Below, piece by piece: positions 4,144 through 20,000 of a stretch of DNA of 32,000 bases. The notes under the pieces were generated by a model. That model did no database searches. It was not told the origin of the DNA and saw only the letters and a program-made list of their open reading frames with translations. The stretch lies in NCBI RefSeq assembly GCF_000400465.1, contig NW_008806293.1, forward strand, positions 154,280-186,279. The letters run 5' to 3'. How positions within the stretch are numbered: position 1 is the first letter of the stretch; each line of letters begins with the position of its first letter. The position numbers and the translations under genes are program-made. Origin of the DNA: Wallemia ichthyophaga EXF-994. Its lineage: Eukaryota; Fungi; Basidiomycota.

Positions 4144-6747
4144 TCAAGCACCCTTAACCTCCGCCAAAAGCTCTTTAAGCACCTCATACTCATTTTCATC
4201 CTCAAACGATGTCCTTGTGCGCCCAAGGAACGTCCTTAGAATGCTCTTGGCTTGGTACCTCCAATCAGGAGAGGCATCCTCTTGGTTGTTGGGGTCATTT
4301 ACGTCCGCAGGCTTATCACCAAAGTTCTGCAACACATCCACCAAATCATTGATAGCTTCTGACGCTCTCCGGAATGCTTTGAGGTCATTTTCGACAGAGT
4401 CGTCTGAGCCAACACTAGCTCTGTATGCTTTGAGATGCATGTCGATCGCGTTTCTATACTGCCCCTTCCAGAAGCAGAGTCTGGCGTAAGATTTAAAAAC
4501 GCGAGGCGATGACGATACCTTCTTGAGGAGCGAGTATTCGTAAAGTCTGTCAACAGCTCTGAGTAGACCATGACCTTCGTTTGGATTGTGCGCGACTCGA
4601 GCTCCCTCAGCGGTAGCGTCACCCTCAATAGCATCCTTTTCGTTACGTGGAGCGAGTGTGACAGCGTCAACTATCTTGTCGACAACGTCGAGTTCACTCG
4701 AGTCGTCATTCTCGCCGCAAATCTTCTCACCTCTGATATCTGCTAGTCTACCAACGGATCTAGCAGCATCAGCCAACTGACCGACGTCTATTGCGACAAT
4801 CATGAGGTTCTGCCATATACGCCAGTTATCGAAGCCGAATTTCGAACCTTGCTTGAGGGCTCTGAAAGCAAGCATTTTGTTATCGTGCGACTGTAGGGCT
4901 TGTGAGAATGCATGTCTTTCGGCGATAAATGGCTCACTCACTACTCCTTGATCGCCGAGACGGAGATAAACACTGGCAAGATTATTCCACGATTCCGCAT
5001 CGTCATCTTCCACAGCGACACATCTACCGAAAGATTCAATCGCGCTATCCCAATCCTCTACTTTAATACTAGCGCAACCGAGAATGAACCACGAGTGGTG
5101 GAAAAGGGGGTTGATAGCGACGGCGTTGCGCAACACTTCTATAGTGCATTTATAGTCACCTTTCGCAAAGTACAATCCACCGAGAGATCTCCACGCACGA
5201 CTACTCGATCCTTTCGACACCTCTAATGCCTTTTGGTAGTGCTTCTCGCAGTTGGACACGTCGAGATCTCCATACAAACACCACAACTTTGCGACACGCA
5301 TGACGTCCATTCTTGTACGTGTCTTTGAATCTACTGTTGACTTGGCGCGTGTGGTGATAGTTTGTGATTCGACGATATTTCCTTCGAGTAAACCTTTCAC
5401 TGTCTCGAGGGCATCTCCCTGTCTATCAGTACTGACGTAACAGATGATGGTGTCTTCCCACATCTCCAGCTTCTGGTAAATCTCGAGAGCTGATCTGACA
5501 ACACCCATAGCGACGAAACGCTGTGCTAGCTCTCGTTCTAACTCCCACTTAGCTGGCATTGGCATGGCGAAGAAGTACTTCAAACGCTCTACATTACTCG
5601 AGTCGGATGTCGGCATTTGATCGATTAGGGCTTGTAATTGGAGGGTGGAACGTTGGACGGTGCGGGTGCGATGGGCTTCCAATCTACTTCTCAGCAGCAA
5701 AGCCATTGTGTAAATGGACCAATTTTGATGATTCGATAGCACTCTCTGTACGAAAGCACCCATTTGCGAATTAGTGAGTCCATTCTCTGGTGCCGTGTTC
5801 TTTATATTGAGACACATGGCTAGAAGGATACATTGATCGACAGCCGACAGCTTTGGTTGATTGGTTGGGTCAATGTGGGATAAAGGAGCGGATGCGTCAA
5901 CCGTCGAGCTGAATTGAGTCTGTTCGAGGAGGGTGTCGTCGTTGAGTTGGAGGTTCTTGACTTGAGTATCGGCGTCGTTAGTGTTTTCGTGACTGTCGTG
6001 ACTGTCTTTGGACTGTGCAAGCAAAACAAGCTGGGTAATATCGCTTTGTTGGAATTTCGTACGCTTTCCGAGGGCACCAGTGAGATGAAATTTGAGTTGA
6101 TTCATGTTGGCAGCTTCTAAGAAAGTTTCCGAGGCTTCTCTGTCCCTTTCGCACATGTGATACGCGATACCGATTTCAAGAGTGAGTCTGGCTTGGAGAG
6201 GAGGGGGAAGTCTATCAGAGAATGACTGGTTGACGCCATCGAGGATGGATTGGGGGAGGGGAACGCAATCGTCGAGCAAGTGCTGCTGGGAGATTGCAGC
6301 TCTGAGTTGCCACCACTTTGCAGATCCCAATGGCAGTTCACCTTCATCGCTTTTGAGTAACTCGGCCAAAATGGCTTGGGAGATGAGGAGCAATGGCGCG
6401 TATCTGGTCAAGTGATACGCAGGTTCACCGCCAGAGCTCAGTTTGTGAATTGCAGTTGAATTTTGATAGTCATAGTCATTCCACAGGCCATTCAAGTCTG
6501 CCAAAGTGAAATCAACGTCAGGACCAGTCCAATTGACTTGAATGAAGGAATGAAGGAGTGCTACAGCAACAGCCAGCGCATCCTTCTCATCGACTGTAAC
6601 TCTAACCTTGAGATACTCCAAATCTATATCACTGAGTATCTTCTGCGCTGCATCGCCTAGCAGTACCTCCTTGAATTTTCCTTGGTTAACTAGTTGTACA
6701 AGGCCACTGCCACCTGCACCCTCGAGCAATGCCAGCTCTGAATCCAT
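4144..6747 (-). CDS. EMW1: TPR-repeat protein of the EMW1/TTC27 family, single exon, 867 aa
   Basis: Family-typical segments LTGALGKRTKFQQ, NWSIYTMALLLRSRLE and RTVQRSTLQLQALIDQ, plus a TPR array (AWRSLG, WFILGC, AESWNNLASVY, NWRIWQN). Confidence 0.85.
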   Translation of the reverse strand: MDSELALLEGAGGSGLVQLVNQGKFKEVLLGDAAQKILSDIDLEYLKVRVTVDEKDALAVAVALLHSFIQVNWTGPDVDFTLADLNGLWNDYDYQNSTAIHKLSSGGEPAYHLTRYAPLLLISQAILAELLKSDEGELPLGSAKWWQLRAAISQQHLLDDCVPLPQSILDGVNQSFSDRLPPPLQARLTLEIGIAYHMCERDREASETFLEAANMNQLKFHLTGALGKRTKFQQSDITQLVLLAQSKDSHDSHENTNDADTQVKNLQLNDDTLLEQTQFSSTVDASAPLSHIDPTNQPKLSAVDQCILLAMCLNIKNTAPENGLTNSQMGAFVQRVLSNHQNWSIYTMALLLRSRLEAHRTRTVQRSTLQLQALIDQMPTSDSSNVERLKYFFAMPMPAKWELERELAQRFVAMGVVRSALEIYQKLEMWEDTIICYVSTDRQGDALETVKGLLEGNIVESQTITTRAKSTVDSKTRTRMDVMRVAKLWCLYGDLDVSNCEKHYQKALEVSKGSSSRAWRSLGGLYFAKGDYKCTIEVLRNAVAINPLFHHSWFILGCASIKVEDWDSAIESFGRCVAVEDDDAESWNNLASVYLRLGDQGVVSEPFIAERHAFSQALQSHDNKMLAFRALKQGSKFGFDNWRIWQNLMIVAIDVGQLADAARSVGRLADIRGEKICGENDDSSELDVVDKIVDAVTLAPRNEKDAIEGDATAEGARVAHNPNEGHGLLRAVDRLYEYSLLKKVSSSPRVFKSYARLCFWKGQYRNAIDMHLKAYRASVGSDDSVENDLKAFRRASEAINDLVDVLQNFGDKPADVNDPNNQEDASPDWRYQAKSILRTFLGRTRTSFEDENEYEVLKELLAEVKGA

Positions 6748-8574: not shown

Positions 8575-8675
8575 GTTGATTTGTTGAAAGAAAGGGGGAA
8601 GGATGTGAAGATGTATGTGAAGGGCAGACTGTAACAATGAGGATCTAAAAAGTACAAAATGGGGATATAAAAAGA

Positions 8676-8766
8676 AGGAGATAATGGGGTTCGAACCCAT
8701 GACTTCCGCGGGTAACATTGTTGAAACGCTGTGAACACGGCGCTCTAACCACTGAGCTATATCTCC
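8676..8766 (-). tRNA. tRNA-Val(CAC) with an 18-nt intron at the canonical 37/38 position (intron 8729-8712)
   Basis: Full cloverleaf: acceptor GGAGATA/TATCTCC, D arm GCTC-AGTGGTTA-GAGC, anticodon stem CCGTG/CGCGG with loop TT-CAC-A|intron|C, T arm ATGGG-TTCGAAC-CCCAT. An oligo-T Pol III terminator lies just downstream. Confidence 0.88.
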
Positions 8767-8889
8767 TGTGAAAGAGGAGGTGATTCAAAATAAACAGTAT
8801 CGCCTAAATTGCAAAACGACGAAATCAACCGAAATACGGCGATTTTTATATAAAGAAAGGCACATGATACGATGCAAAAAATGAGATTT

Positions 8890-11189: not shown

Positions 11190-11600
11190 TTAGTCAAAGA
11201 GACCGAGACCCATGTCGTCATCGGATTCTTCCTTGGCCTCTTCCTAAAGGAGAGTTAGATTACAACAAACAGCAAATACCGTTCAAACCTTCTTTGGTGC
11301 CTCCTCTGCTGGGGCATCAGCTTGAGCAGCTGGAGCACCTGCAGCTGGGGCAGCAGCAGCACCGGATGAGACGTTGGTGAGAATCTCAGCGACATCCTTG
11401 CCCTCGAGGGCCTTGGCGAGGAGTGTTGCCCAGATGGCCTCGACCTCCACACCTGCTGCTGAGGTGAGCTTGAGAATGTTCTCTGCCTCGAGTGGCACGT
11501 TCTCGTCAGCCAAGATGAGTGAGGCGTAGGTGCTGTGGGCGTGGCATTAATTATTTTACAATCGTACACGCTCCACGTACGTTGCGAGTTCAGCTGACAT
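11190..11600 (-). CDS. RPP1: 60S acidic ribosomal protein P1; exons 11600-11581, 11532-11289, 11243-11190
   Basis: [16 protein letters not shown]...[19 protein letters not shown], Ala/Pro hinge and C-terminal [13 protein letters not shown]; introns of 48 and 45 nt. Confidence 0.95.
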
Positions 11601-11936
11601 TGGTGCTTTTTGAGTTGTTGTCCTGAAAGACTATTGCGCCTCCCAAAAATTATATTCGCACTCTGGAAAAATTTATAAAATGTTGTATTTGGAAGAGGTG
11701 CGCGTGGGCGGTGTTTATACGTGTCCTGTATGTGCTGCGTGTACTGTTTATTGTGCATTTACCCTCATCCCATGTGATGTTAAGGAGGTAGATCAGTATC
11801 GCTAATTCCATCGATATTCTTGGAGATCTGTACTCCCGTCACTCACAGCTCCTCGCTGCCCCTTTTCACGCTCTTAAATTTCCCCTCCCCGCTCTTCTCC
11901 CGCACGGCCACCAACGACGCACACACACACACCCAC

Positions 11937-13960: not shown

Positions 13961-15169
13961 CTACAATACCAACTGCTTATCAAAAGAAGCTAATGCAATG
14001 GCTAGTGATGCAGAGGTATCAGAGTCACCGCCGAGGAAGTTGTATTGAGGTTCATTTTGCTTACTTATCAATTGCTGATCGTCTGTTGGTGTGCGAGGGG
14101 TGTGGGAGGTGTGAGAGGTGTGAGAGGTGTGCGAGTCATTGACAGTATTCGACCTGTTCACACGATCTACACCGTCAAAATCAAGCTGCGGGAGAGACAT
14201 GAAAGGTTGAGTGGGCATACCCTTCTTATCAGCCCCCTTACCGTCCTCCTTATCGCTATCACCACTGCGCATAGCTCCACGCTTAGACGGCTTCCATTTG
14301 GTCGGCTTCTCGCGAGTAGTGAGTCGTGGATCATACACAAAGCGGCGTCGCGGATGCTCGTAGCGCACTTTGGCGGGCAAGTCCTTCACGTCGAAGGAGA
14401 CGACGATGGATATTCTGTCAAGGTGGCTTGTAGGTGGAAAGAAATTGCTAATTTTGAGCGACTCTACGCGCAAGGGTACTTTAGCCGCGCGTTCCATGAG
14501 TGATGAGTCAGTACCGGGTGAAAAAACACAGTCAGTGGCATAAATAAGTGTTTTAGCAGGATTGATTGCCCTGCCATCAGCGCGAATGAGAGTTTTCTTC
14601 AGCTGTCCCACCGTCCAATCGCCATCCGCGTCGACTATGATAGGAGGGGTCTTGTCTTGGATGCTGATGTCATCCTGGAAAGAGGCGAGGAGAGTGTGAG
14701 TGTCGTTGGCAAACGGGACAACCCTTGCAATCAGGTGTATAATATCGTCACGCTTAACCCACCCCCCAGTACCCTTCTTACCACGCTTGATAAGATTGCT
14801 CACTTGCATGTCGTCATCGCTCAGATACGAACCTTCAAAGTAAGACAGTATCGAAGTGTTTTGCAAGTGCTGTTTGTTGTGTTGTCTGAACTGAGCTTCT
14901 GCGCCAACGTCGATCTGTGTCTTGTAGATGCGAATACAGTTGAGGAGTAGTTCCTCATCGTCTATCAGCTCAAATAGGTCACCACGTCCACGCAGCTTCT
15001 CCTGCTTGACGATCTCAGCCTTGAGATCTCTGACAGTATAACTCGCTGGGAACGACACGGTGAATGGCGTTGCTCGTGATTCTGGGTTATCGAAGACGAC
15101 ACGCAGCTTGATTAATGGAGGTGTCTGCCTTAAGGAGAATAGAGCAGTGAGCGATTTAGATTTGAGCAT
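13961..15169 (-). CDS. Orphan protein with two tandem ubiquitin-fold-like domains resembling Crinkler (CRN) N-terminal domains and a low-complexity tail
   Basis: Long uninterrupted ORF with ATG at 15169. The repeated pattern is F.V.F....TV.DLK.EI / I.IYK / IHLIARVVP, then TVGQLKK.L / LIYA / ISNFFP..ISIVV. The family call is by eye only. Confidence 0.6.
   Translation of the reverse strand: MLKSKSLTALFSLRQTPPLIKLRVVFDNPESRATPFTVSFPASYTVRDLKAEIVKQEKLRGRGDLFELIDDEELLLNCIRIYKTQIDVGAEAQFRQHNKQHLQNTSILSYFEGSYLSDDDMQVSNLIKRGKKGTGGWVKRDDIIHLIARVVPFANDTHTLLASFQDDISIQDKTPPIIVDADGDWTVGQLKKTLIRADGRAINPAKTLIYATDCVFSPGTDSSLMERAAKVPLRVESLKISNFFPPTSHLDRISIVVSFDVKDLPAKVRYEHPRRRFVYDPRLTTREKPTKWKPSKRGAMRSGDSDKEDGKGADKKGMPTQPFMSLPQLDFDGVDRVNRSNTVNDSHTSHTSHTSHTPRTPTDDQQLISKQNEPQYNFLGGDSDTSASLAIALASFDKQLVL
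14099..14134. repeat. 9-bp tandem repeat GGTGTG(A/G/C)GA x4, coding (SHT)n on the minus strand
   Basis: Direct inspection. Confidence 0.85.
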
Positions 15170-15546
15170 TTCTTTGGCTGTACTCAGCAACCCCCGCTGT
15201 CTTTCCAAATTGAGTTACAGTGGCAGCTGTCACTAGATTCTTTATTTGGTTTAAATTGATTTTATTCGCCTAATTTGTGTCGCTCGCCGATCTCCTCCTC
15301 GCTGTTCCGTTTCAAGTTGCTCAATCGACTGCCCCCGAAGCGCACGGGCCGTGCCGTGTGGTCTTGCTCTAAGTTGCCTTCTCTTTACTGCTAATTTGTT
15401 GTTTGGTCAGTGCGGCTGCTTCTGCTCTAAATAGTGTACGCATTTAGTATTTTTCTTTTCCCGGATTATTTCCCCGCGATCGGCACATGTGGTTGATTAA
15501 GCGGATGTGAGTTGTGTGTGAGTATGTGTGCGTGTGCATTTCCTGC

Positions 15547-15580
15547 CATATCTCCCATATCTCCCATATCTCCCATCTCC
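15547..15580. repeat. 9-bp tandem repeat CATATCTCC x3 plus a partial copy in the 5' leader of the TBC gene
   Basis: Direct inspection. Confidence 0.85.
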
Positions 15581-15610
15581 CCCATTTTCCCTTAGTCTCC
15601 AACCATCATC

Positions 15611-17015
15611 ATGTCGTTCAGCACCCACAGTGCAAACGACACATCGCTCCACTCCCAGCTCAACACCGCCCTTTCATCCAACGATACCCACAATATACGC
15701 CGTCTAGTGCGGCTATCTGCGCTGAGCAGCAATCGCGAGCTGCGAACGAGGACTTGGTGAGGCGTGCTGAGCGAGATACAGCGCACGTCTCTCACACGGT
15801 GTTATTAGGTGTCACGTGATGGGTGTGAGCGGTGAAGGCAGAGAAGGCACAAAAGAAGCCAAAGGCACAGGAGAAGGCAAAGGAGAAGGCACAGATACAG
15901 GCATATCCACTTCAACACACCACGATACAGCGCGGCAGTGGTTCATGTTGTCGTCCTTCAATCCAGTTCGTGACGGCACACGCCTTAATCTCACAACCCA
16001 CTTTGACCTCAACAAGCAAGACAAGCGACGTCTACTCACACCCCACCCCGATGAGAACCAACTGCGACTCGATATCGACCGCTCATTGATCCACTACCCA
16101 CTTCACGTGACTTTACAGCACAAGAATCAACTCAAGGCACTCCTCTACGATTTAATTACAACCACTCTCCGCTTACATCCCACTCTAAGCTATTTCCAAG
16201 GCTTTCATGATGTCATCACTGTCATTCTCGTTGAGCTTGACGTTGATGTCGGTGTTTTGCAAGCTTTCATACACCGTTTTACCCTGCATTGGTGCAGAGA
16301 TGCGATGGGCGTGGGTTTGGAGCCTGTGCGGGGATGGTTGCGCGTGTTGCACAAGATACTAATTGCAGTCGACCCTGACGTGGCCATTATCGTTGAACAA
16401 GCCGCTCCAGAACCCTTTTTTGCACTGTCGTGGATACTAACGCTGTTCGCACATGACGTTGTCGATCAACCTACCATTGCCCGTCTATTCGATTTTTGGA
16501 TCGTCGAAGGTCCACCTGCCCTGGTGTATTTCTGCGTAGCGCTTGTGATGGCTGAGAAGGAGAGACTAGTGGAGCTGGCTGGGGAGTGTGACGGTAAAGA
16601 TGCTCATGAAAAGATTGATGACATTGACAACACTGCTAACATACACCAATTTCTCGCTCATATACCCAAATGTCTCAATGAAAAACTTACTCAAGTTATG
16701 GAAATGGCGATGAATATTAGACAGCGCTTTCCACTTAATCACCCTTTGATTGATGTGGATGGGATTATGGGAAGACAGTCGGTGTTAAGGTCACCACCAT
16801 TCTCAATCACTGATCGCGCTGCAGAGTTGGCGGTGGGGAGACTTGAGTGTCTGGTGAGACAGCCACTGCCATCTATAGAGTTTAGCGGGGCAGAGAGGAG
16901 AAGGAGGAGAATATCGCGGGATAGGCGTAGACAGCAATTCAAGTGGGCAGTCACGCTCGGAGTGACACTCGCTGCTGCTGCATATGGATATTACTCGAGA
17001 CACCAAATAAAATAA
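15611..17015 (+). CDS. TBC-domain Rab GTPase-activating protein, Gyp8/TBC1D20-like, tail-anchored; exons 15611-15756, 15809-17015
   Basis: R-finger LRLDIDRS, Q-finger SYFQGFHDV, FALSWILTLFAHD and a C-terminal TM helix; a 52-nt intron yields LRTRTWCHVMGV. Confidence 0.85.
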
Positions 17016-17072
17016 GCCAATCGAATGCATTTCCTTGATTTTCCTTATTTCCCTCTGTCTGCAACGACCATC

Positions 17073-20000
17073 ATGTTAAAGCCAAAGATAAGCCGGAGTG
17101 GGGAATTATCTCAATAGCATTGAGCCCTCTAATAATATAAATTAGCCAGATTGCGTCGCTATCAACACACGATACACAGGAATCAAGTCGGTGTGCAGCT
17201 ACTCACACCATCTCTTCGTAAACAACTCTATCCGCGGGATCTGCAGGGTCCTGACAGTGCTACCATAAATATCGCGTTGGAACATTTACAAAAGCACGAT
17301 CTCGGTGGCACTGGATCCACTCTCCCACCCACCACCTTCACTCTCCCGCCCCTCCAAGGACCCGATATAGACAATCACTTCTACAGAATTGGCAGTGAGG
17401 CTGCACAACCGTATCTTTCTCTTTCGCGGACTTTCTCCGCCTCGAATCTCCCCCCGTACCCAGATTCTTGGGTCACTGATACCCCCGGCTGGACTGTATA
17501 CGATGCAGACGGCAGCTACAAATCTATCCAAAATGGTCCCAGCGGTGAGTCTATGCTCGTGTTTGACGTGGAGACCCTTCCCCATCTATCCCAGCACGCT
17601 GTGATGGCGGTAGCCGCCTCACCCACACACTGGTACTCGTGGATATCGCCCTATTTAACCGGGCATTCGGAGACCACTGAGCATTTTATACCACTCGGAG
17701 AGAGCCACAAGAGTTACGATCGTGATGGCCACGGGAGACCTGCAAGACCTCGGATCATTATCGGCCACAATGTCGGATTCGATAGAGCACGACTTGGTTC
17801 AGAGTACTCCCTTCATCTCTCTTCTAACCGTTTCATCGATACTATGTCGCTGCACGTCGCTGTGCGCGGCATGTCCAGTCCACAGCGCCCAGCGTGGATC
17901 GCCCACCAGCGCGACAAAAAGACAGAACGCGATCATGCACGCGAAGCAAGCCAGTCGATCAAGAACATTCTCGCAGAGCGCGACGATCCTGAGCTGCTAC
18001 TGTCTCTGATGCGATACGAGCGAGAAGAGCGAGAAGCGCAGGAAGCACTCGACCGCGCTTTTGAGATGGGTGAGATGGGTGGTAACAGTAGTAGTGGCAG
18101 TGGCGAAAGCGAAAGCACCACCACAGACACCCCCGACGACCACAAACTGTGGCAGGACATAGCCTCCTCCAACTCGCTCAGCAACGTATACGAACTCTAC
18201 CATCCCCGCAGACAGCCTCTAGAGAAGGAAGTGCGGGGGTATTTCACTGATCCATCGAGCAACGCGCATACGCTGAGACACGAATTGCAGCATCTCATGC
18301 ATTACTGCGCCGTAGACGTTCAGGCGACGCACGACGTATACAGCAAGGTCCTTCCACTATTCCTCGACCGCTGCCCACATCCCGTCAGCTTTGCGGGTAT
18401 GCTCGGCATGGGCAACTCTTTCCTGCCTATTGACACCTCGTGGCGGGAGTACCTGCGCAAAGCGGAAGGTAAGTACAGGGAGCTGTCGGAAAATGTTCAG
18501 ACCAGCTTAGGGGAACTGGCTCAATTTGCCCGTGGGAAAATGGACGATGAGTCGTGGAGAGATGATGTGTGGCTCGCGCAGCTCGATTGGACACCAAAAC
18601 GTACAAGGGGCGTGAGACGCGGGAGTGGGAGCGGGAGTAGGAGAGAAACAGTCTCGACGTACATACCCTCTTGGCTCGCTAAACTTCTCTCGACACGCAC
18701 AGCATCCTTCGTCAGCTCACCCACTCTCAAATCTACCCTGTTGCCCTACTTGCTACAAATCAAGTACCTGGGTCATCCCGTTGTGTTCACGACAACTCTC
18801 GGCTGGGCAGCGAGAGTGAGACGGAGTAGTACTACAAAGGGTGAAGAACAAAAAAGCATCCCGCTCAAGGAAGGAGATGTGAGGTATGACGAGTTGCAGA
18901 ACTACTACTTTCTTCCACTCCCAGGTTTAGCCACGGGTAGTTTAATAAGCAGACTGCTCCTGCGACTCGTGAAAGATGGCAGCCTCACTAGCATTCTCAA
19001 ACAAGAGGATCTGCTCAAGGTGTTTGAGGGGTATGAAATGGCCTCTGACTATCTAATCAGTAAAGTGGCTTTGGATAGCTACTTGAATTCTTCCCCAGAC
19101 TCCACTGAATCCCCTGAACCATCATACTCGCCCACCTACGCACAGCTCAAGGAACTTGATTGGACACCTGCCAAATTAACTCCACTTATGAATAAGAAGC
19201 TGCTTGAGGCTGCTGAGCGCACAGGCGTGTCTTTGGACCAGACATTCTTACAATCTGCCAACGCACTTAAAGCACCAGCTGCTGCATCCGCCGCACAACC
19301 ACAGATGCAACCGAAGTGGTACTGGGATCTGGAAGGGAAGTTAAAGCGGGAAGAAGGTGAAGAGGAAGGAGGAGGAGAAAAGAAAGGGAAAGTACAAGTC
19401 TCTACACGCAGTAAATTATCCCCCATTCTACTCAAACTACGCTGGCTCGACTATCCAGTTTTCCACTCACGCAAACATGGCTATGTATACAGAGTGCCTC
19501 GTGCAGATATCTCCACTGGTAAACACACCACCCGCCAGCCCACATTATCCTTCAAACATCCCGCCGATGACCACCTCGCTGGGATGGAGAGCGATTTCGC
19601 CTTCTATAAGATACCACATAAAGACGGCGAGGAGCACAACGTCGGTAATCTTCTCTCTAAAGGCTTCATACATGCTTTGGAGTCAGGGATGCTGAGCAGT
19701 GAGGACGACACGGCTCATGCGGCCATGTCACTCAATGCCCAGTGCAGCTATTGGATTAGTGCAAGGGAGAGAGTTATCAAGCAGTTTGCTGTTTTTGATG
19801 GAACGAGTGGGTTAGATATGGGAATGAAAGATGGCGTGGAAGGTGGTGTGCAAAATGGTGTACAAAGCGTCAATTTCAATGAAAGCACTCGAGAAACTAC
19901 CTACCCTCACAAACGCGGCATGATCCTTCCAGAAGTTATCACCATGGGCACCATCACTCGCCGAGCAATTGAAAAAACCTGGCTTACTGCATCTAACGCC

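Follow-up and report, generated by a model that had tools for sequence, protein, structure and literature searches.

An orphan Wallemia gene encoding a protein with an N-terminal ubiquitin-like domain, probably a non-catalytic adaptor

The window analysed here, a stretch of 32,000 nucleotides, carries on its minus strand an open reading frame (ORF) of 402 codons, which corresponds at 99% identity and 100% coverage to a W. ichthyophaga hypothetical protein at NCBI (P0001). The peptides quoted in the original prediction were located on this strand, with IKLRVVF from 15112, IIHLIARVVP to 14714 and the second module at about 14701-14390. The neighbour said to lie tail-to-tail about 165 bp away was confirmed as a convergent NOX-family gene encoding ferric-reductase TM, FAD and NAD domains, the stop-to-stop distance being 164 bp. 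The gene order pol-gamma / TBC-RabGAP / ubiquitin-like (Ubl) gene / NOX / AMPK-beta is kept in W. mellicola, in which the locus is syntenic and single-copy. The gene and the parts of its product are the following.

13961..15169, minus strand: complete single-exon CDS, 402 aa plus stop, based on the ORF list, the sequence and the ortholog alignment
15169: start ATG (MLKSKSL...), common to all full-length orthologs
15122..15169, minus strand: N-terminal peptide, aa 1-16 (MLKSKSLTALFS...), moderately conserved (55% mean pairwise identity), pLDDT below 50
14912..15121, minus strand: module 1 core, aa 17-86, predicted ubiquitin-like beta-grasp core (AF2, Pfam, Foldseek, hhalign)
14750..14911, minus strand: insert of about 55 aa in module 1, aa 87-140, between beta3 and the last strand (60% mean pairwise identity)
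14708..14749, minus strand: last strand of module 1, aa 141-154 (DDIIHLIARVVPFA), predicted to close the beta-grasp (AF2 strand 143-150; 70% mean pairwise identity)
14384..14707, minus strand: module 2, aa 155-262, the best-conserved globular part (71% mean pairwise identity, many invariant columns)
14282..14383, minus strand: conserved basic extension, aa 263-296 (…LPAKVRYEHPRRRFVYDPRLTTREKPTKWKP…; 70% mean pairwise identity), pLDDT below 50
14054..14281, minus strand: divergent disordered middle tail, aa 297-372 (40% mean pairwise identity), pLDDT 25-28
14177-14209, minus strand: motif QPF(M/L)SLPQLDF, aa 321-331, with invariant columns F, S, L, P, L, D and F
14091..14135, minus strand: 9-bp coding microsatellite (CTCTCACAC, coding strand) encoding (SHT)n (TRF: period 9, 5.0 copies)
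13964..14053, minus strand: conserved C-terminal motif, aa 373-402, QYxFLGGDxDTSASLA(I/L)ALASFDKxLVL (72% mean pairwise identity)
13961-13963, minus strand: stop codon of the 402-aa ORF

This ORF is a real gene constrained by selection. It is intact across several Wallemia species at 48-63% amino-acid identity, its synteny is kept, and the W. mellicola ortholog keeps a spliceosomal intron (52 bp, phase 1) in a frame-consistent position, exactly at the junction of modules 1 and 2. In the comparison with W. mellicola, pN was 0.18-0.25 and pS 0.81-0.86, these values being given instead of dN/dS since the synonymous sites are saturated; the strong depletion of non-synonymous relative to saturated synonymous change indicates purifying selection on the gene in Wallemia. 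The conservation is moreover block-wise: identity amounts to 65-72% in both modules, in the basic stretch and in the C-terminal motif, and drops to 40% in the middle tail. The idea of a chance ORF or annotation artefact without coding function, for which one could invoke the sole annotation as a hypothetical protein, a family assignment without significance and the more than 60% of residues at a pLDDT below 50, is effectively refuted by this conservation.

The description of the gene as an orphan was borne out, as only Wallemia orthologs were found among 5.8e9 clustered proteins, and an exhaustive search of 1.84e9 representatives with the family profile gave the same picture. The sole match outside the genus (P0007) is a sushi-repeat protein whose score is the sum of eight weak repeats, and it was discarded as an artefact. 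Two word-indexed searches with the profiles of the modules gave no match beyond Wallemia at E<=10; one of them missed even the orthologs and is for this reason uninformative. The family profile had no match among the PDB sequences at E<=10, and the protein searches disclosed no paralogs, all returns being ortholog clusters and their fragments. By these searches the gene is restricted to Wallemia.

In the AF2 model, which is of moderate confidence, module 1 (aa 17-154) is shown as a ubiquitin-like beta-grasp interrupted by the insert of about 55 residues. The core consists of beta1 (LIKLRVVF), beta2 (PFTVSF), alpha1 (TVRDLKAEIVK), two short helices and beta3 (CIRIYKT), with predicted strands at 19-26, 36-41 and 79-84, a helix at 46-60 and a pLDDT of 56-81; hhalign places this core in register with ubiquitin residues 13-34. 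The insert is predicted as a helix and a loop (helices 89-100, 107-111 and 123-126, strand 113-115) and carries an acidic DDD patch, a Gly/Lys loop and an invariant Trp at aa 137. When the model was compared with the PDB using Foldseek, the top matches were all Ubl folds (bacterial Ubl, TM 0.72; RAWUL, 0.70; SUMO1, 0.68), with E-values of about 1e-3 to 1e-2 for a query model of mean pLDDT 46. Both this model and the family profile are weak because the alignment holds four or five sequences, all from Wallemia. The Pfam matches of module 1 belong to four families of the ubiquitin clan (Crinkler, DWNN, ubiquitin and UBL_UBAC1), the last three falling on the beta2-alpha1 region and scoring below Crinkler in the window protein. 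Every Pfam match lies below its gathering score; no named family has significant support for either module, and the evidence places module 1 in the ubiquitin clan (beta-grasp Ubl), short of a family.

With its predicted topology and weak Pfam matches, module 1 resembles the integral Ubls (DWNN of RBBP6/Mpe1, the ubiquitin family, UBAC1-UBL), from which it differs by scores below the curated thresholds, by the insert and by its terminus. Neither module is followed by a C-terminal Gly-Gly after its last strand in any ortholog, the ends being ...ARVVPFAND for module 1 and ...IVVSFDVKD for module 2; module 1 is therefore a Ubl integrated into its protein, not a modifier for conjugation. The partner domains of the integral and tandem Ubl families (zinc knuckle/RING, UBA, OAS, USP) are also absent from the Wallemia protein.

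Module 2 is possibly a second beta-grasp, its fold not being established. Its predicted order of elements is beta-beta-alpha-beta-beta-beta, and the strands 177-180, 207-211, 231-241 and 252-258 and the helix 187-198 came out alike in two independent AF2 runs, both at a pLDDT of about 40. Modelled alone, it reached a pLDDT of 40.7 and the isolated model had no Ubl matches in Foldseek; in Pfam there was no match at E<=10. Beside the order of secondary structures, a second Ubl is hinted at only by a stretch resembling EGIPxxxQRLIFA. In hhalign, aa 174-211 (IIVDADGDWTVGQLKKTLIRADGRAINPAKTLIYA) were placed in register with ubiquitin 10-46, 'ADGRxINPxKxLIYA' facing 'KEGIPPDQQRLIFA' of ubiquitin, in an alignment that is not significant (P=0.047, 1% probability). 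This faint signal looks more like classical ubiquitin than Crinkler. The top ranks of the whole-model Foldseek search were tandem di-ubiquitin, ISG15 and OASL, over 190-250 aligned columns, a likeness to tandem Ubl proteins (ISG15, OASL, USP7-HUBL) that has to be read with a TM of about 0.4, E-values of 1.6e-3 to 1e-2 and a low-confidence model. The two modules had been described as similar to each other; this did not withstand comparison, since BLASTP found nothing, hhalign gave a probability of 4% over 27 columns and the scores were at z = -0.4 to 1.6 against 500 shuffles. A sequence duplication was thus rejected, all three tests being at chance level.

Behind module 2, the basic extension, with its invariant columns L, P, K, R, Y, H, R, R, F, D, P, T, K, K, W and P, may be a part of this module or a basic linear motif. 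The tail as a whole bears three conserved motifs. It had been characterised as disordered and K/P/H-rich, and the disorder and the abundance of K and P were retained; its composition is overall D/S/T/P/K/R-rich, with five His, four of the five in the SHT repeat. The C-terminal motif consists of an acidic stretch followed by a short amphipathic helix (AF2 helix 383-394, pLDDT about 50). This 'SLALALAS' helix was considered as a ubiquitin-interacting motif (UIM) and rejected, as searches of tails and 30-mers gave no Pfam match, UIM included, at E<=10; its Ser also does not fall where the UIM consensus has one. A Pfam search of aa 110-402 found no domain at E<=10. The predicted lack of a toxin domain was accordingly upheld, with no Pfam match in aa 263-402 and a pLDDT of 25-50 there, and at the level of sequence there is no recognisable enzyme or toxin domain anywhere in the protein.

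The original prediction took the two modules for a doubled Crinkler N-terminal domain, a domain for which Zhang et al. (2016) reportedly use the name 'CR Ubl header'. According to this proposal, the protein would be a domesticated header with one or two true homologous domains, having lost its C-terminal toxin and serving now as a decoy or adaptor. PF20147 (Crinkler N-terminal domain) is indeed the best Pfam match of the window protein (aa 31-109, E=5.6e-5), with a score of 24.3 bits that misses the gathering cut-off of 24.6 bits by 0.3. The alignment spans positions 11-79 of the 106 of the profile, about two thirds, and is not reproducible in the orthologs, with a weak echo of 14.5 bits in P0002 and no match in P0003 and P0004. 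The insert was then deleted to let the profile align end to end, including the strand 'IIHLIARVVP'. The score fell to 15.7 bits, DWNN became the top match in all four orthologs, and in this construct the last strand found no alignment with the C-terminal part of the profile, so that the equivalence of this strand with the 'HVLVxxP' element of Crinklers is unsupported. A calibration with canonical Ubls showed that cross-family matches of 15-28 bits are routine inside the ubiquitin clan; none of the five canonical Ubls matched Crinkler, and the match is therefore not one that every Ubl produces, which argues in favour of the header.

[quoted passage not shown] Look-alikes stand collinear with them in the window protein as PFTVSF, LKAEI, IRIYK (LRLYK in P0004) and HLIARVVP, or PFTVSF / LKxEI / (I/L)R(I/L)YK / H(L/M/F)(I/V)xRxVP (HxxxRxVP) in the family. 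Module 1 further resembles the Crinkler domain by its N-terminal position, its predicted beta-grasp fold and its length of about 136 aa (about 130-136 aa in the comparison), its end coincides with the W. mellicola intron, and Crinkler domains are present in a basidiomycete, Serendipita (PMC9815663 supplement). Against this, the PF20147 match ends at position 79, and the motifs are generic beta-grasp features of types shared with ubiquitin, which has VKAKI, RLIF and HLVLRL. The family profile drew no Crinkler-domain protein from the 1.84e9 representatives at E<=1e-3. Unlike Crinkler/CR effectors, which form a multi-copy, recombining family, the Wallemia gene showed no paralog expansion in the protein searches, its product ends without an effector or toxin domain (such as REase, kinase, HNH or peptidase), and its host is a free-living halophile. 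Module 2 shows no Crinkler signal. The part of the prediction that stands is thus the Ubl fold of module 1 with PF20147 as best match in this species, together with the lack of a following effector domain and the restriction of the gene to its lineage; the assignment to Crinkler remains sub-threshold, the case for a doubled Crinkler N-terminal domain falls short, module 2 having neither a Pfam match nor a confident fold, and we consider the domesticated header unlikely. Measured by the refuting condition that came with the prediction, best matches to another Ubl family and no similarity to CRN, the idea came out neither confirmed nor refuted.

We propose instead a Wallemia-restricted, probably intracellular and non-catalytic protein in which module 1 is a Ubl, module 2 would fit a second beta-grasp and the most likely role is that of an adaptor or scaffold, a reading to which we give a probability of about 0.5. 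Integral Ubl domains dock onto partners in signalling and proteostasis proteins. By analogy, the Ubl module or modules of the Wallemia protein would dock onto a partner protein, and the tail motifs (QPFLSLPQLDF, and at the C-terminus the helix QYxFLGGDTDTSASLALALASFD) could recruit further partners. In the layout of the protein, the Ubl of module 1 is followed by the better-conserved module 2, the basic stretch and then a disordered tail bearing these motifs. The intracellular location is probable because no signal peptide was recognised on reading the sequence, aa 1-16 being too weakly hydrophobic. Taken together, the product is probably an orphan, genus-specific Ubl-domain protein acting as a non-catalytic adaptor.

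One more specific docking role deserves to be weighed. The N-terminal domain of SSK1/Mcs4 binds a MAPKKK heteromer and is significantly related to the CR Ubl headers (PMC5289972, review); from this kinship, a fungal Ubl leaning towards Crinkler could be SSK1-like. On this view the Wallemia protein would regulate the HOG pathway on its own, its SSK1/Mcs4-type N-terminal Ubl docking onto a stress MAPKKK (Ssk2-type). The HOG signalling of W. ichthyophaga depends on the two-component SLN1/Ssk branch (PMC4904012). The confinement of the family to a xerophilic/halophilic genus also agrees with this view, but lineage restriction by itself is silent on function, and nothing ties the gene to osmotic stress. 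The SSK1/Mcs4 domain is an intracellular fungal Ubl with the kind of docking mechanism proposed for our protein, which unlike SSK1/Mcs4 has no receiver domain (no Response_reg match in Pfam). We therefore judge the SSK1-type regulator to be very improbable. The chance is slimmer still for the combined form, a stand-alone Crinkler/SSK1-type Ubl header, possibly in tandem, kept without an effector, which would dock inside the cell onto a stress MAPKKK (Ssk2-type), or onto a comparable signalling hub, and regulate it.

In the case where module 1 would be a true Crinkler header, it would represent a rare, toxin-free lone survival of the domain in a free-living basidiomycete and a simple system for the role of the header inside a cell; a Crinkler/SSK1-type header would likewise show the header fold put to a use other than toxin delivery in a free-living organism. 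The result as it stands, a genus-specific Ubl-domain protein, improves the annotation of Wallemia genomes, from 'hypothetical protein' to 'Ubl-domain protein'. W. ichthyophaga is the most halophilic fungus known, and for work on genes confined to one lineage in an extreme halophile the Ubl gene offers a candidate of modest promise. A minor variation was also seen within this species, as the length of the SHT repeat differs between strains, the window protein having one SHT unit more than P0001.

The gene is encoded by a single exon of the minus strand, and the MLKSKSL... start is common to every full-length ortholog. The peptides quoted in the original prediction were found in this frame where it had placed them.

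Window 13961-15169, minus strand: coding sequence, start ATG at 15169, stop at 13961-13963, 402 aa in one unbroken ORF.

The product is 99% identical over its whole length to P0001, an NCBI "hypothetical protein" of W. ichthyophaga, and the gene is already present in public Wallemia genomes, where it is annotated as hypothetical. The sole difference between both proteins lies in a 9-bp coding microsatellite (14091-14135, minus strand) encoding (SHT)n in the disordered tail, with four units in the window and three in P0001; judging from these two sequences, the run is a within-species length polymorphism. Another 9-bp tandem repeat, CCATATCTC (~4.4 copies), is found with adjoining CA-rich repeats at 15546-15600, within the ~650 bp that separate the gene from the divergent TBC-RabGAP.

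The Pfam scan of the neighbours identified a convergent NOX-family NADPH oxidase, a divergent TBC-RabGAP, a mitochondrial DNA polymerase gamma and an AMPK beta; the predicted tail-to-tail position of the NOX-family gene is confirmed, its ORF end being 164 bp from the stop of the gene. The same synteny (pol-gamma, TBC, the gene, NOX, AMPK-beta) is observed in W. mellicola. Among 5.8e9 clustered proteins, relatives were restricted to Wallemia (W. mellicola with 59% identity, two other assemblies with 63% and 48%, and fragments), and the family profile, run exhaustively with HMMER against 1.84e9 representatives, retrieved no further genuine relatives. One non-Wallemia match, a sushi-repeat protein whose score is the sum of eight weak repeats, was discarded as an artefact. 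A sequence search of the PDB gave no match. The family alignment contains four or five sequences only, which weakens both the profile searches and AF2. By these searches the gene is genus-restricted, as far as databases show, and the "orphan" status proposed earlier is borne out.

Synonymous sites have reached saturation between W. ichthyophaga and W. mellicola (pS 0.81-0.86), whereas non-synonymous differences amount to 0.18-0.25 for the conserved blocks and 0.42 for the middle tail.

Mean pairwise identity along the protein
Module 1 (aa 17-154): 65%
Module 2 (aa 155-262): 71%
Basic stretch beyond module 2: 70%
Middle tail: 40%
Final 30 residues: 72%

That the ORF would be a non-gene is barely credible, being contradicted by the ortholog alignment, the synteny, an intron in W. 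mellicola and the comparison of pN with pS; on this comparative evidence, the gene is real and selectively constrained. The W. mellicola intron (52 bp, phase 1, positions 4449-4500 of the locus sequence L001) lies in the Asp codon directly after ...VVPYAN, at the exact junction of modules 1 and 2, which gives independent support to the two-module layout; the window has no intron at the corresponding site (about 14700-14704). In metagenome and Logan assemblies, prokaryote-style gene calls ran through this intron, leaving insertions in the orthologs P0002 and P0004, or were split at it (P0005, P0006), so that these database "proteins" include translated intron.

The AF2 model, obtained from an alignment of six rows, is of poor quality as a whole (mean pLDDT 46) and of moderate quality over module 1 (56-81), where it shows strands at 19-26 and 36-41, a helix at 46-60, a strand at 79-84, then a helical insert and the strand that closes the domain, at 143-150. 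Foldseek matches in the PDB were exclusively ubiquitin-fold proteins, with modest E-values (1.6e-3 to 2e-2); tandem di-Ub, ISG15 and OASL were ranked at the top, and single-domain matches (bacterial Ubl, SUMO1, RAWUL, ubiquilin) had TM-scores of 0.5-0.72. A predicted beta-grasp fold for module 1 is thus reasonably supported.

The original prediction of a Crinkler N-terminal domain is retained in one respect: PF20147 is the best Pfam match of module 1 (E=5.6e-5, aa 31-109, profile positions 11-79 of 106), ahead of weaker matches to DWNN and ubiquitin. Its 24.3 bits are, however, below the cut-off of 24.6, and the match is inconsistent in orthologs, with 14.5 bits in P0002, none in P0003 and P0004, and recurrent DWNN and ubiquitin matches. 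Since the HVLxxP motif lies toward the end of the Crinkler profile (PMC6131194), residues 87-136 of the insert were deleted, letting the "IIHLIARVVP" strand pair with the profile's end; the Crinkler score dropped to 15.7 bits and DWNN topped the list in all four orthologs. In a calibration scan of ubiquitin, NEDD8, SUMO1, Smt3 and Hub1, cross-matches to other ubiquitin-clan families were routine (15-28 bits, E 1e-6 to 1e-1), so a 24-bit match points to the clan and not to a single family; none of the five matched Crinkler, and the Wallemia domain therefore leans to Crinkler more than they do. The collinear PFTVSF, LKAEI, IRIYK and HLIARVVP resemble the published AFPVxI, LKxxI, LxL and HVLxxP of Crinkler, but ubiquitin itself has similar motif types, making them non-discriminating. 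No Crinkler-domain protein appeared among the family-profile matches at E<=1e-3 (1.84e9 representatives). In contrast to Crinkler effectors, the protein remains under the Pfam threshold and displays neither effector fusion nor, in the protein searches, family expansion. On sequence grounds, module 1 as specifically Crinkler does not hold up well, and a true domesticated Crinkler header is unlikely. Published work relates the Crinkler Ubl header to the N-terminal Ubl of SSK1/Mcs4, a fungal signalling protein (PMC5289972), and reports Crinkler domains from the basidiomycete Serendipita (PMC9815663), which offers ordinary alternative explanations for a Crinkler-leaning fungal Ubl. By analogy with this literature, an SSK1-type Ubl protein that regulates a stress MAPKKK of the HOG pathway in this halophile could be imagined, at low probability. 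A toxin-free Crinkler/SSK1-type header serving intracellular signalling in an extreme halophile would be moderately interesting if true and is a long shot.

Module 2 is the most conserved part of the protein and has no Pfam match at E<=10. The claim of two similar modules was not upheld: BLASTP between them gave no match, hhalign 4% probability over a beta2-alpha1 stretch only, and alignment scores were at chance level in every setting tried (z -0.4 to 1.6). Folded alone, module 2 reached pLDDT 40.7, with meaningless Foldseek matches. The same beta-beta-alpha-beta-beta-beta order came out of both AF2 runs, and hhalign against the five canonical Ubls aligned aa 174-211 with ubiquitin 10-46, "ADGRAINPAKTLIYA" facing "KEGIPPDQQRLIFA", an alignment that is not significant (P=0.047, probability 1%). 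The strand order and this register favor a second beta-grasp, for which we see about even odds; if module 2 is a Ubl, its sequence looks closer to classical ubiquitin than to Crinkler.

The tail (aa 263-402) has no Pfam domain, an AF2 pLDDT of 25-50 and a composition rich in D, S, T, P, K and R, with three conserved elements.

Basic stretch: LPxKxRYxHxRxRF..DP..T...K..KWxP
Internal motif: QPF(L/M)SLPQLDF
C-terminal motif, short predicted helix: QYxFLGGDxDTSASLALALASFDKxLVL

The last was considered as a UIM, which the Pfam scan did not support. As anticipated, the protein is toxin-free, with no toxin, nuclease or kinase domain by Pfam. Its architecture consists of one Ubl domain, perhaps two, without a Gly-Gly end, then the disordered tail with conserved linear motifs. 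As the best-supported interpretation we propose, with a probability of roughly 0.5, a Ubl-domain adaptor or scaffold; the module 1 fold, the selective constraint and the absence of enzyme domains are shown by the analysis, and the function itself is inferred. Such a protein would be non-catalytic and probably intracellular, as its N-terminus reads without signal peptide; docking onto a partner would fall to the Ubl module(s) and recruitment of others to the linear motifs of the tail, a working mode resembling that of integral Ubl-domain proteins. Lacking GG, it falls outside the Ubl modifiers. Its most fitting place is among the ubiquitin-clan domain proteins, as a new member restricted to the genus and with a Crinkler-leaning N-terminal Ubl.

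Elsewhere in the window, ARAGORN called a 94-nt "tRNA-SeC (tca)" at 8674-8767 (minus strand), which would be remarkable in a basidiomycete. Rfam finds there an ordinary tRNA (RF00005, 59.8 bits) whose anticodon loop carries an insertion of ~20 nt, and the loop reads UU-CAC-A, with position 37 followed by an intron; this score and reading rule out a selenocysteine tRNA and identify an intron-containing tRNA-Val(CAC). A 167-aa ORF at 11255-11758 (minus strand), with a GCA/GCT-rich repeat at 11318-11363, has no Pfam match; at this place, between NOX and AMPK-beta, W. mellicola has an intron-containing gene for a ribosomal 60S acidic (P) protein, and the true gene at the site is probably a spliced ribosomal P protein, on either strand. 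In W. mellicola, a glutathione S-transferase gene (L001 920-2072) lies between TBC-RabGAP and pol-gamma; only ~135 bp separate these ORFs in the window (17015-17151), which means that W. ichthyophaga lacks the GST gene at this locus.
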